The position numbers were made by a program, and so were the translations under genes. The notes beneath the pieces are model-generated. The model was not told the origin of the DNA and ran no database searches. It saw nothing but the letters and a program-made list of their open reading frames with translations. From NCBI GenBank assembly GCA_048013815.1, contig CM106586.1, positions 10,788,001 to 10,852,000 of the forward strand: a stretch of DNA of 64,000 bases, in the 5' to 3' direction. Below, piece after piece: positions 59,530-63,838 of the stretch. The stretch comes from Setoptus koraiensis (taxonomy: Eukaryota; Animalia; Arthropoda). How positions within the stretch are numbered: the stretch's first letter is position 1; the number at the start of each line of letters is the position of its first letter.

Positions 59530-59979
59530 ATGGCTACAGCTCGACCGCAGATGAGCCCTCAAGGCGCCGCAGCTTTTAAAGAGGCTGTCAAATCAGTGCT
59601 AACAGATTGGCCCGCATTAACTTTAGCGATCGAAAATGGAATGGGTGGCAACGAGGCCCTGACAAAAAGAGACTGGATGTGTAAAGTTGTAGCAGAATCA
59701 ATGCTCAAGGACCGACACATGGACCTTCTGGATTTCATACATCAGATAGTCGACACAGAATTTGATACTGTTGTAGAGGACGGAAGCTTGGAGTATAACG
59801 TTAGGTGGATTACAAAATTTTACAGAGATTGTTTGGAAGGCAGGGATCAGGAAGTGTTGGATTCCATCACTCAAGCGGCGTTCAAGAAGATGTCTGTGTC
59901 TAACACAAGGCCTCAGGCGGCTCCTCTCAATATGAGTGAAGATAAAGATTCGGATAGTGACGAAACCGAGGGAGAGTGA
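59530..59979 (+). CDS. TSR2: Pre-rRNA-processing protein TSR2
   Basis: FKEAVKSVLTDWPALTLAIENGMGG...FDTVVEDGS (WGG domain) with an acidic tail. Confidence 0.92.
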   Translation: MATARPQMSPQGAAAFKEAVKSVLTDWPALTLAIENGMGGNEALTKRDWMCKVVAESMLKDRHMDLLDFIHQIVDTEFDTVVEDGSLEYNVRWITKFYRDCLEGRDQEVLDSITQAAFKKMSVSNTRPQAAPLNMSEDKDSDSDETEGE

Positions 59980-60156: not shown

Positions 60157-60837
60157 TTATATAATACCAATCTTGTTGGCGACATCAAGAGCGTCGTAAT
60201 CAGGTGCAAGCCTGACATAGGCCTTCTTCTGACCATCTGGCCTAATCAATGTGTTCACAGATTGGACTCCAATTTGATATAATTTCTTAACCGCCATCTC
60301 TATCTGAGGTTTGTTAGCTTTGATATGGACAATAAACACTAATGTGTTGTTGTCTTCGATTTTCTTCATTGCAGACTCAGTTGTTAATGGATGCTTGATG
60401 ATGGAGAATTTGTCCAATCTCGGACGATCAGGCACAGATTTTCTTGGGTATTTAGGAGCCCTAGGTAGGATCTTGGTGTGTGGGCGACGGAAAGAAGCCG
60501 ACGTTCTGACCTTACGTGTTCTCTTTTGCCATGCGCCTTTTTCCACTTTCTTCTTAGCGGCCAATGCTTTGGCTTTAGCTGCCTGCGATGCTTGAGTAGA
60601 GGACAGTTTGGTGACAACATTTTTCGTTGGTGCCTTTTTGCCTGTTACAGACTTCACGGGTGCCTTGGTCTTGATGATCTTCTTTGACAATTCCTTGGCA
60701 TCCTGCTTCTTTGAGGCCACAGACTTGGGCTTGTCCACTTTGGGGGCAGGCTTTGAGGCTGCTGATTTGTCACCAGAAGAGGCAGGCTTGTCTTTTTTAG
60801 TTGTCTTGGCTGTCTTTTTTTGTTCCTTTGCTGGCAT
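60157..60837 (-). CDS. RPL23A: 60S ribosomal protein L23a with Lys/Ala-rich N-terminal extension
   Basis: [14 protein letters not shown]...[25 protein letters not shown]...[23 protein letters not shown]. Confidence 0.98.
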
Positions 60838-61575
60838 CTTGATACCTCAGTGGAATTTTTTTATTATATAAAAAGAAACAAAAGTAGCTAATCAATTGGC
60901 TAGGGTGAGTTCTTAATTTAATTGGGTTCTCAAACCAGGTAGTAACTGATGTGATGGTAATAGATATTCCAGAACACAAATTTATCAATAATTTTGTTTG
61001 ATAGAAAACGCGACCGAAGGTTCATCCATTCAAATGGATACAGTGAAGAAAACGTGTGCTTCGATTATTTGTAAGGTACACCGGAACATAGCGGCCGCCC
61101 TGGTGGAGAACACGCATACCGATTTGTTATGGCGCTGAATTCAAATTCGATTTTGATGGGGGGAGATCTATCTCCCACCGCAGGAGACGGGAGAATTCTC
61201 CCCGGGAGATTTGGGAGAAGCGGTGCATCTTATAAATAATCGACGCACACGTTTTCTCCGATGCATCCACATGGGTGATCCTTTAGTCGCGTTTTCCAAT
61301 AAACAAAATTTTCGACTCGGATGTTCTCGGTTACTTATATTATCATCACATCAGCTCCTACCTGGTTTGTGAACCCAAATAATTTAAAAACTCATCCTAG
61401 CCAGTTTATAAGCTATTTTTGTTTCTTATTATATAATAAGACAATTCCACTGAACCATGAAGATGCCAGCAAAGAAACAGAAAAAGATGGCCAAGACAAC
61501 CAAAAAAGGCAAGACGGCCAAGATAACTAAAAAAGACAAGACGGCCACGACAACCAAAAAAGACAAGCCTGCCTC
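60779..61575. repeat. Inverted duplication of the RPL23A upstream region and first ~20 codons
   Basis: Arm 1 60779-61084 reverse-complements to arm 2 61221-61575 with scattered substitutions and a triplicated 27-bp unit. The spacer of ~136 bp contains the palindrome GGGAGAATTCTCCC. Confidence 0.93.
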
Positions 61576-62755
61576 CAAACATGAATTGAAAGAACTCATC
61601 GAGACCTTAAAGAAGGAACCCACTTTAATTCAAGTGAGAACGGCGCTCAAGTATATCAGATATTATCTTAAATCAACAGGCTTAACCAAGAAGCTATTGA
61701 AACAAGTTATAAGACTTTGGGCGGACTCGCATGAAAAAATTCGCATCATTTGTCTTCTTTGTATCATACGAATTTTCAGAAGGAAGGCCGACCTTAAAGA
61801 GATCATCACTAAAAATATGTATTCCAGCTATATTAAAAACAACGCATCTCAAGTTTTCATGCGTCAATCATTGATCGAAGTCTTTATGTTGGATCATGCT
61901 CTAGCCTACAAGCAAGGTTTCGTATACTGCAAACAATTGGCCTCGACATTGCGAAATGCTTATGAGAGCAAGGCAGAAACTGTCTGCAATTGGACTTACA
62001 TCAACTGTTTAACGCTGTGGTCAAATTTGATTTCAAGCGCATCGAACAAGCACGTTCGACAATTATTGAATCCAGTCGTTGAGCTTCACATCGGAACTAT
62101 AAATTTGGTGTCATCTCCTAGATACTATCCGCTGCAACTGCATCTCATAGCCAATCTCGTCGATATTAGTGCTAAGTTAGACGTCTTCATACCAGTTCTA
62201 CCACTACTGACTTCTATACTGGCTAGGTTAAAATTAGGAAGCAAAACTAGTAAGGAATCTTTCGATTTCGATTCCTTGTTGCACGTTTCTGAATCGGACG
62301 TTCAATCTGGCCTCTATTTTGACACGACTGTCGATCGCATCTATCATCATATGGTCAAGTTTCTCGCAAGTCAGTGCCACAGAATATCGTTTCCCGAACT
62401 GTGCCTAATCGCCAAAATTCAGATAAAAAAATTTATCAAAAATTATAAAAAAGAAAGCGAAAAGTTCAGAAATCTTCTCGTGAAATTGGAGGAAAATATA
62501 AAATTTATTGAAGTCAGGAGGCAGACGGTAGATTTTGCATTCACAAACTTTTCAGCCATAGTAAGTAAATATGTTCATGATTCCCTATATATATATAGTT
62601 ATATATAAAGATATATCATACTAGCTAACTGTTTATTTTCGCAGGATGCCTGGGAAAAGGAGACCAAGGATACTGGCAAATTAGCCCTTGTCAAGCTGGC
62701 TCATGAATTGGAGGATAAGCTTTCATCCACTGAGGCAATAAGCTGTGGCCAATAA
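61457..62755 (+). CDS. NOC2L: NOC2L (nucleolar complex protein 2)-like, N-terminally replaced by an RPL23A-derived peptide (~404 aa, 2 exons)
   Basis: Exons 61457-62560 and 62645-62755 (phase 0). LLKQVIRLWADSHEKIR, AYKQGFVYCKQLASTLRNA, VCNWTYINCLTLW, PRYYPLQLH, ISFPEL and DAWEK match the Noc2 domain. Confidence 0.85.
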
Positions 62756-62817: not shown

Positions 62818-63838
62818 TCAGTTGTGGTGTTGTTGTTGTCGGATTATGTTGAACTGTGGTCTTCTTTGCATCAGATATCCAAAAGGTCTGACCTGGTTTT
62901 GAACTAGAGGTACAGCTGTGGATTGTGTTTGTTGTGGACCAAGAGAGTGCAAATTATTGTTTGCGCTGGATACATTAATAGCGCCTTGGTGCTGTTGTGC
63001 TTGTCCCTGATTGACCAGGTACACTTGATCGTTGCTAGATACTAACTGTCCATTTGACATCGCATTGACATTTATGTCCTCAGAGTCGTCTTCCACTAAA
63101 GCTGCTGGTCTGGGGGCAAAATTATTAACAAGATTTTGGTTGGGGTTCATATTCATATTGTTGGGATTCATATTCATGTTGTTGGGATTCATATTGGTGG
63201 ATGGTGTAGTGAATTGCCCATTGAATGATATGTTCTGACCCATTGGGTTGTTCCCTGAGGTTGCCGGAGACGAGGCCGGTCTAGGTGCGTTCCCGCCTGA
63301 GGGAGCTAAGCAACGGTATCGCGAAGTAAAAAAAAATCAACATGAAATATTAATTTGGTAGCAAATGATTTCGCATCGATAAGGGAATCACTTCTAGGGG
63401 TCGAATTGAAAAGATTTTCCACTTAACAGCAAGCTAGACTTAAAACAAGTTGTCTGGATGCGGTAACTTACGCAATACACCCGAAGTTGACAAAGTGGTG
63501 CATATCGGGATGGCATTGACGAAACGACAAACTGTTCCATTCACGAGATATAATGGTTGACGTTTTTGAAATAGATTGCCCAATAAATTGATCTTCCTCG
63601 CCGCTCTTCCGGTGTCTTCATTGACCGAACCAAGATCATTTATGTGGTGTATTTTGTGACCATCACCAGTGTTGTAGCTGTGGTATTTGTTTCGCGCGAG
63701 AAATTTTGTGACATTTTGTGAGGACACAGGCTGCAGGGATTTTCTCAAGCGATTCGGTTGATCCATTGTGATATCAGAGCATCGTAATGAATCGAACCAA
63801 GCAAGAAGAATTATAAATATTATGAATTGATTCGGCAT
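62818..63838 (-). CDS. Uncharacterised secreted protein with Asn/Gln-rich C-terminus (~284 aa, 2 exons predicted)
   Basis: Exon 63838-63472 has a signal peptide (MPNQFIIFIILLAWFDSLRCS) and the motif LYLVNGTVCRFVNAIPICTTLSTSG, with a GTAAGT donor in phase 1. The acceptor at 63305 restores the frame of ORF 63243-62818. Confidence 0.65.

Follow-up and report, generated by a model that had tools for sequence, protein, structure and literature searches.

Probable in-place replacement of the 5' end of a mite's only Noc2 gene by an inverted copy of its neighbour RpL23A

Introduction

Chimeric genes formed when a partial duplication recruits the promoter and first codons of a neighbour are described in Drosophila and C. 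elegans. Here we describe a related case in the eriophyoid mite Setoptus koraiensis, in a 64,000-nucleotide stretch of its genome (GenBank assembly GCA_048013815.1, contig CM106586.1, positions 10,788,001 to 10,852,000 of the forward strand; hereafter the window), where the gene for the 60S ribosomal protein RpL23A (uL23) lies head to head with the gene for the 60S assembly factor Noc2 (human NOC2L). The locus resembles the described chimeras in that the 5' flank and N-terminal codons of a donor are fused in frame to the body of another gene, the donor is intact, and the junction carries microhomology. It differs in that the recipient is the only copy of a normally essential gene, apparently re-headed in place, with no unaltered parental copy elsewhere, and in that the donor is the divergent neighbour, which yields a quasi-palindromic intergenic region; the same gene pair also appears to have been hit twice independently.

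Bidirectional housekeeping promoters offer a second comparison. As in those, the divergent starts are less than 1 kb apart (619 bp between ATGs), the products have related functions (a 60S protein and a 60S assembly factor), and the arrangement is conserved, but such promoters consist of one shared region, whereas the window has mirror-image homologous halves flanking a conserved central block. The third comparison is with NOC2L and yeast Noc2 themselves (PF03715; the Noc1-Noc2 and Noc2-Noc3 pre-60S factors), which the mite protein matches in core alignment, Pfam score, and single copy number, while at 404 amino acids it falls short of the canonical length of about 700-790, some 280 N-terminal residues and the long C-terminal tail being absent. 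The Noc2 core and uL23 of the window are ordinary members of their families and the class of event is known; what differs is the in-place re-heading of a sole copy, the quasi-palindromic putative promoter, and the recurrence. A literature search, which was not exhaustive, returned no description of the RpL23A-Noc2 locus or of a mirror-image promoter joining a ribosomal protein gene and an assembly factor gene.

The explanation we favour, at a probability of roughly 0.8, is that the sole Noc2 orthologue of this mite had its 5' end replaced in situ by an inverted RpL23A copy after the split from its closest relative in our sample. Comparisons were made with 26 close relatives carrying Noc2 domains, returned by a word-based protein search limited to proteins of 202-644 amino acids. 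Their proteins and loci carry P and L labels, respectively (P0001 at L006, P0002 at L009, P0016 at L022, P0012 at L007, L008, and L011, P0020 at L020, and P0017 at L023).

Results

An inverted copy of the RpL23A 5' end at the start of Noc2

The inverted repeat consists of two arms (Table 1). A repeat search aligned 60781-61029 with 61271-61519 (249 nt, 80% identity) and 61035-61083 with 61221-61269 (49 nt, 84%), with 137 nt separating the inner ends of the arms, and a MAFFT pairwise alignment of the arms extended over about 300 bp at a mean identity of 81% with a single 4-bp indel. The inverted-alignment score of the window was 296, against 21 ± 2.3 (maximum 29) for the null, which here and below consists of local inverted-alignment scores of shuffled sequence. 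An earlier sequence-only reading of the window had described about 300 bp of RpL23A upstream DNA plus about 20 codons recurring in inverted orientation nearby, and these alignments confirm it, at about 80% identity.

The copied arm contains ATGCCAGCAAAG..., the equivalent of RpL23A codons 1-20. At the protein level, the first 20 residues of RpL23A correspond to MPAKKQKKMAKTTKKGKT...KKDKPAS, and the first residues of the plus-strand open reading frame (ORF), MKMPAKKQKKMAKTTKK..., mirror the RpL23A N-terminus. The arm closes at the junction GCC TC/C AAA (breakpoint at the slash, position 61575/61576). Within it, a 27-bp (9-codon) unit encoding AKTTKKDKP is present in three in-frame copies at 61475-61573 on the plus strand, spaced by 27 and 27 and 80% identical to each other, which bears out the triplication seen in the sequence-only reading.

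An in-frame TGA at 61451-61453 closes the Noc2 frame upstream, all candidate start codons (61457, 61463, and 61487) lie within the copied arm, and no ATG occurs between codon 11 and the conserved Noc2 core, so the start codon must come from the copy, as had been proposed. These alignments show that the sole Noc2 gene opens with about 242 bp of upstream DNA, a start codon, and a Lys-rich stretch of 40 residues that all derive from RpL23A, and the inverted copy heading Noc2 supports the earlier description of a Lys-rich chimeric N-terminus behind a mirror-image intergenic region. Identity along the arms is fairly even, mostly 84-88% per 25 bp, falling to 60% in a single 50-bp stretch. The window arms contain no perfectly identical tracts, so nothing suggests recent gene conversion.

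Table 1. Features of the RpL23A-Noc2 region, in positions of the window
Feature	Positions	Strand	Description
TSR2 homologue	59530..59979	+	Pfam WGG 3.9e-21; 90% amino acid identity to TSR2 of L006, same position
RpL23A (uL23)	60157..60837	-	Donor of the copied 5' end; single exon, 226 amino acids
Source arm	60781..61083	-	RpL23A codons 1-20 plus 246 bp upstream; aligns over its whole length to L006 RpL23A upstream DNA, 64%
31-nt block	61077..61107		TACACCGGAACATAGCGGCCGCCCTGGTGGA; identical to L006 5732-5762; at the inner edge of the source arm, mid divergent intergenic region
Unique spacer	61084..61220		Remnant of ancestral intergenic DNA; left part aligns to L006 5739-5800
Copied arm	61221..61575	+	Inverted copy of RpL23A upstream DNA (to 61462) plus codons 1-20, expanded by triplication
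Noc2 exon 1	61457..62560	+	368 codons; Pfam Noc2 (PF03715)
Noc2 intron	62561..62644	+	84 nt, phase 0, GTAAGT...CTAAC...CAG; a stop is met if read through
Noc2 exon 2	62645..62755	+	36 codons plus stop; 78% to P0001 356-378

The only Noc2 gene of the genome

The two exons of Noc2 were compared with other proteins separately. Exon 1 matched the Pfam Noc2 profile at 224.9 bits (cut-off 29.9, E 1.7e-66) over profile positions 3-276 of 298; the homology of exon 2 to P0001 begins directly where that of exon 1 stops, and the conserved DAWEK motif resumes at 62645. The joined product of 404 amino acids, with its open frame and intact intron, is the one that the sequence-only reading had sketched. Its residues 70-364 align to residues 284-597 of 749 in human NOC2L and 297-640 of 710 in yeast Noc2, and it matches chains of solved pre-60S particles from human (8fkv_NA, 9.9e-46), yeast (7nac_8, 1.9e-32), and Chaetomium (8i9v_CY, 8e-30). 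The core begins at about residue 40, a position equivalent to residue ~250-300 in human and yeast.

Across the whole assembly (48,755,295 bases in 2 contigs), PF03715 has a single locus, the window gene, and the CBF family has three, as expected for Noc1, Noc3, and Noc4. Because the genome holds this one Noc2 locus, the window gene is the NOC2L/Noc2 orthologue and not a spare duplicate; the search returned no second full-length NOC2L, contrary to the idea of a duplicated gene. All columns invariant across the 27 aligned proteins are kept in the window protein, and between its core and that of L006 the nonsynonymous divergence (dN) is 0.20, with synonymous sites saturated (proportion of differing synonymous sites, pS, 0.75). 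This check on constraint, which had been suggested for the Noc2 domain, indicates that the gene stays under purifying selection.

The donor gene encodes an RpL23A with both expected domains (Ribosomal_L23eN, 1.4e-19; Ribosomal_L23, 7.2e-14) and the C-terminus ...ANKIGII. Against L006, it has a dN of 0.021 and a synonymous divergence (dS) of 0.45. The genome holds two Ribosomal_L23 loci, and we take the one in the window for the only cytosolic-type copy, the other, on contig C1, being presumed mitochondrial.

These results bear on a further explanation of the locus, that it is a fold-back chimera created in assembly or a duplicate of NOC2L that is no longer expressed and is decaying. Inverted repeats separated by a short spacer are well known as assembly errors, and the protein is short relative to human and yeast NOC2L. 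A fold-back would, however, give near-identical arms, whereas the arms here show about 20% divergence and an indel, are joined to Noc2 in frame, and include an internal triplication; the divergence and the in-frame junction rule an assembly fold-back out, and a similar structure is present in an independent assembly of another species (L009, below). A dead duplicate is contradicted by the single Noc2 locus, by the retention of every family-invariant residue, and by a dN far below dS. Both possibilities had been named in the sequence-only reading as ways in which it could fail, and we reject both, considering an explanation of this type extremely improbable.

The Noc2 intron interrupts ...FSAI/DAWEK... 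and has no counterpart in any of the 26 relatives, the closest included. It looks like a lineage-specific gain; we ruled out an origin from an introner or repeat on the basis that the intron sequence is unique in the genome. Eriophyoid genomes are extremely compact and intron-poor (PMC7738191). Given the massive intron loss in these genomes, an extra intron in Noc2 is notable.

Direction and timing of the copying

The closest relative of the window Noc2 is P0001 (65% identity by BLASTP, 69% in the alignment), and the two are sisters at 100/100 support. Its locus, L006, has the gene order of the window, with TSR2 on the plus strand, RpL23A on the minus strand, and Noc2 on the plus strand, so the comparison of synteny that had been called for could be made directly: the order is the same, and L006 has no inverted repeat (score 30, null maximum 33). 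The L006 Noc2 has a native start, MAAKRPSKISKHELKE, at the place where the window reads ...KKDKPAS/KHELKE. Since the L006 RpL23A start matches the RpL23A arm of the window, the RpL23A arm is the original and the Noc2 arm the copy.

In a three-way alignment of the non-coding arms, the RpL23A and Noc2 arms of the window are 79% identical (Jukes-Cantor distance, JC, 0.25), the window RpL23A arm and the L006 RpL23A upstream DNA 64% (JC 0.50), and the window Noc2 arm and the L006 RpL23A upstream DNA 58% (JC 0.62), with branch lengths of about 0.07 for the source arm and 0.19 for the copy. Because the copy is nearer to the source arm in its own genome than L006 is to that arm, the copying postdates the split between the window and L006 lineages.

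To the right of the spacer, the L006-type Noc2-proximal DNA (about 150 bp plus an ATT-rich tract) and the first ten codons are replaced in the window. At the outer junction, RpL23A GCC TC/T and L006 Noc2 ATC TC/A AAA CAC have 2-3 nt in common. We read the event as an in-situ replacement of the proximal upstream region of Noc2 together with its first approximately ten codons.

Noc2 length and gene order before the event

The sequence-only reading had taken the gene for a truncated NOC2L, deprived of its native N-terminal part and acidic tail and placed under a ribosomal protein promoter. Compared with its human and yeast counterparts, the protein does lack the tail and some 280 residues at the N-terminus, but the event did not remove them. 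The Noc2 proteins of the 26 relatives are all short, with lengths of 402-540 amino acids; each has a variable Lys-rich leader (0-110 residues) followed by a core that starts KKKPSK.ELK.VIE.LKKD, and they terminate shortly after DAWEK...LPKL, with a long acidic tail in P0001 only. As the short form is common to all 26, the inverted duplication did not cause the shortness, and this distribution indicates that the short form is ancestral and predates the duplication. Hidden upstream exons of Noc2 have no room, since in nine lineages RpL23A occupies the opposite strand from about 370-690 bp upstream. The tail of P0001 consists of about 90 Asp-rich C-terminal residues and is missing from the window protein. 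Most mite Noc2 proteins also carry an internal acidic or Lys-rich insertion (alignment columns ~385-510 and ~640-735), which the window protein and P0001 lack.

The event likewise did not bring RpL23A and Noc2 together, as had been supposed, because the head-to-head order (RpL23A on the minus strand, Noc2 on the plus strand) is found in eight other lineages (L006, L009, L010, L012, L017, L018, L019, and L022), in which 372-667 bp separate the two ATGs (about 515 bp in L022). L012 was the one new informative locus among the five, and only five, that a metagenome scan yielded, and it lacks the repeat. At L016 and L021, a PABP-like gene takes the place of RpL23A upstream of Noc2.

A second case in another mite lineage

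A comparable structure occurs at L009, which comes from a Joint Genome Institute (JGI) metagenome and probably represents a distant mite, its Noc2 (P0002) being 51% identical to that of the window. Here the inverted arms link the 5' ends of RpL23A and Noc2 at 4302-4413/4888-4999 (93%) and 4481-4526/4793-4838 (83%), with an inverted-alignment score of 222-231 against a null of about 20-21. The copy includes ATGCAGGCCTC, the start of the species' own RpL23A (MQAS). Codons 4-35 of the Noc2 leader correspond in frame to RpL23A codons 133-164 (96 nt, ~77%, score 82 against 16.6 ± 2.1), and in BLASTP comparisons with RpL23A proteins the leader gave E-values of about 3e-10 to 7e-10 for most. A leader built from RpL23A codons 133-164 behind an RpL23A start indicates that the copy originally extended from the promoter as far as about codon 166, after which codons 4-132 were deleted. 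The sister of P0002 in the tree is P0016 (100/98), whose locus, L022, lacks an inverted repeat (score 24, null maximum 26) and has the same RpL23A start as L009 and a standard Noc2 leader common to many other lineages.

The presence of such similar repeats at one gene pair in two distant lineages could also mean that the repeat is ancient in mites and that gene conversion has preserved it in recognisable form in a few lineages, the window and L009 then sharing one old event. The junctions speak against this, lying at RpL23A codon 20 in the window and near codon 166 in L009, whose copy also has an internal deletion. So do the sister loci L006 and L022, which have no repeat and retain an ancestral-type Noc2 start (a KRPSK or KKKPSK motif before the core), the lack of perfect-identity tracts in the window arms, and the standard leaders, which show no profile similarity to RpL23A. 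We judge a single ancient repeat to be quite improbable. Given two different junctions, sisters without the repeat, and a match of each copy to the RpL23A of its own species, two independent events account for the data far better than one ancient converted repeat. We also considered an ancient fusion in which all mite Noc2 leaders would derive from RpL23A, and rejected it: hhalign comparison of 20 standard leaders with 9 RpL23A proteins gave an E-value of 0.8, equal to that of the reversed control.

In both copies, a further in-frame ATG has arisen 2-3 codons before the ATG borrowed from RpL23A, by a change from ATCAAGATG to ATGAAGATG in the window (61457-61459) and from ATAATAACGATG to ATGATAACGATG in L009 (4980-4982).

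A third case is possible in P0017, whose leader has weak similarity to RpL23A residues ~146-171 (E 0.02-0.07). Its contig ends 215 bp upstream, and against the RpL23A genes of other species the leader found no support at the DNA level. The independent assemblies that carry P0012 (L007, L008, and L011), P0020 (L020), and P0017 (L023), which represent three lineages, break 95-280 bp upstream of the Noc2 start. Inverted repeats upstream of Noc2 that an assembler failed to resolve would produce breaks of this sort.

Regulation of the pair and route of the rearrangement

Under the in-situ replacement that we favour, about 300 bp, made up of codons 1-20 of RpL23A and the 242-246 bp upstream of them, would have been copied in inverted orientation onto the Noc2 side after the split from L006, overwriting the proximal upstream DNA of Noc2 and its first approximately ten codons. 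The copy would have been joined in frame at a microhomology of 2-3 nt, with template switching during replication or repair as the likely route, and the 9-codon unit would have been triplicated later. Noc2 transcription would then start from a copied core promoter of the RpL23A type, at a site homologous to that of RpL23A, leaving mirror-image core promoters around a conserved central block and perhaps tightening the co-expression of Noc2 with a 60S protein. The borrowed Lys-rich leader may stand in for the ancestral Lys-rich leader, which resembles a nuclear localization signal (NLS), and could itself act in nuclear or nucleolar targeting (as an NLS or nucleolar localization signal, NoLS). 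Both this role and the promoter activity of the copy are predictions from sequence.

A serious alternative is that the contribution of the copy is limited to the 5' leader, start codon, and leader peptide, while the shared central region, including the 31-nt block, still governs both genes and no new regulation has arisen. A short divergent intergenic region was already shared in the eight other lineages, the 31-nt block lying between the arms is identical in L006, and conservation is lower in the distal part of the copy, the copy as a whole evolving about three times as fast as its source. However, the copy covers about 242 bp upstream of the ATG, as long a stretch as the entire RpL23A side of the intergenic region, with most 25-bp windows in the identity range given above, and the native Noc2-proximal DNA of L006 is gone from the window, so that any core promoter located there has been lost. 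We consider regulation from the central region alone unlikely, though clearly worth keeping in view.

Some observations count against the replacement of a working promoter as we have described it. The threefold faster change of the copy arm and its 50-bp stretch at 60% suggest that part of the copied upstream DNA may be drifting instead of serving a promoter function. The two arms and L006 all retain a conserved block, GCACACGTTTTCT, which is not enriched in the genome (52 occurrences against 63 for the control); as it is not a genome-wide motif, no element of a ribosomal protein regulon can be demonstrated in the copy. Finally, the ancestral state is read from one close relative only (P0001 at L006).

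The 31-nt block contains CCACCAGGGCGGC on the minus strand, which, with at most one mismatch, occurs 129 times in the genome against 33 times for the reversed control. The core of the block is CC(A/G)CCAGGGCGGC, and its commonest genomic form, CCGCCAGGGCGGC, is a CCGCC-AG-GGCGG palindrome. We take this core to resemble the CTCF core consensus, and it could be a candidate insulator or transcription factor site.

Other features of the region

A cluster of GGGAGA/TCTCCC palindromes at 61160-61220 is present in the window and absent from L006. The motifs form small palindromes, GGGAGATCTATCTCCC and GGGAGAATTCTCCC, that adjoin the inner breakpoint of the copy, and the cluster could have been left behind by the rearrangement or could be a GAGA-like element. 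The predicted fold of the spacer is unremarkable (z = -1.4), and the intergenic region has no Rfam match at E<=1 and no tRNA. Another inverted repeat (65 nt, 91%) is found elsewhere in the same genome.

TSR2 is a conserved neighbour of the pair in the window, L006, and L009, and lies nearby in L018. TSR2 (a 40S-protein chaperone), RpL23A, and Noc2 form a conserved micro-cluster of genes for ribosome biogenesis in several mite lineages. Downstream of Noc2 on the minus strand lie a Gln/Asn-rich ORF at 62818-63243, with MNPNN repeats and no Pfam match, and an ORF at 63440-63838 with 85% identity to the L006 gene located downstream of Noc2; together they may represent two exons of a single gene.

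Discussion

The locus provides a datable before-and-after case, in which a sister lineage retains the ancestral state. If our reading is right, a sole-copy and normally essential gene has kept its function although its promoter-proximal sequence, start codon, and N-terminal end now come from its neighbour. It also offers a natural test of whether a ribosomal-protein-type promoter and a Lys-rich leader are exchangeable between a ribosomal protein and an assembly factor.

The similar, independent event in L009 suggests that the RpL23A-Noc2 pair is prone to, and tolerant of, re-heading, and more broadly that head-to-head pairs in streamlined genomes are prone to such swaps. The compactness of eriophyoid genomes may favour local rearrangements of this kind. 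A bolder and at present doubtful extension is that in compact mite genomes the front ends of essential genes are recurrently, and possibly under selection, renewed by a neighbour's inverted promoter, leader, and first codons, with RpL23A-Noc2 as a hotspot that has seen at least two independent events and perhaps a third in P0017. If this were true, mirror-image promoters could offer a general means of locking the expression of ribosome-assembly genes to that of ribosomal proteins.

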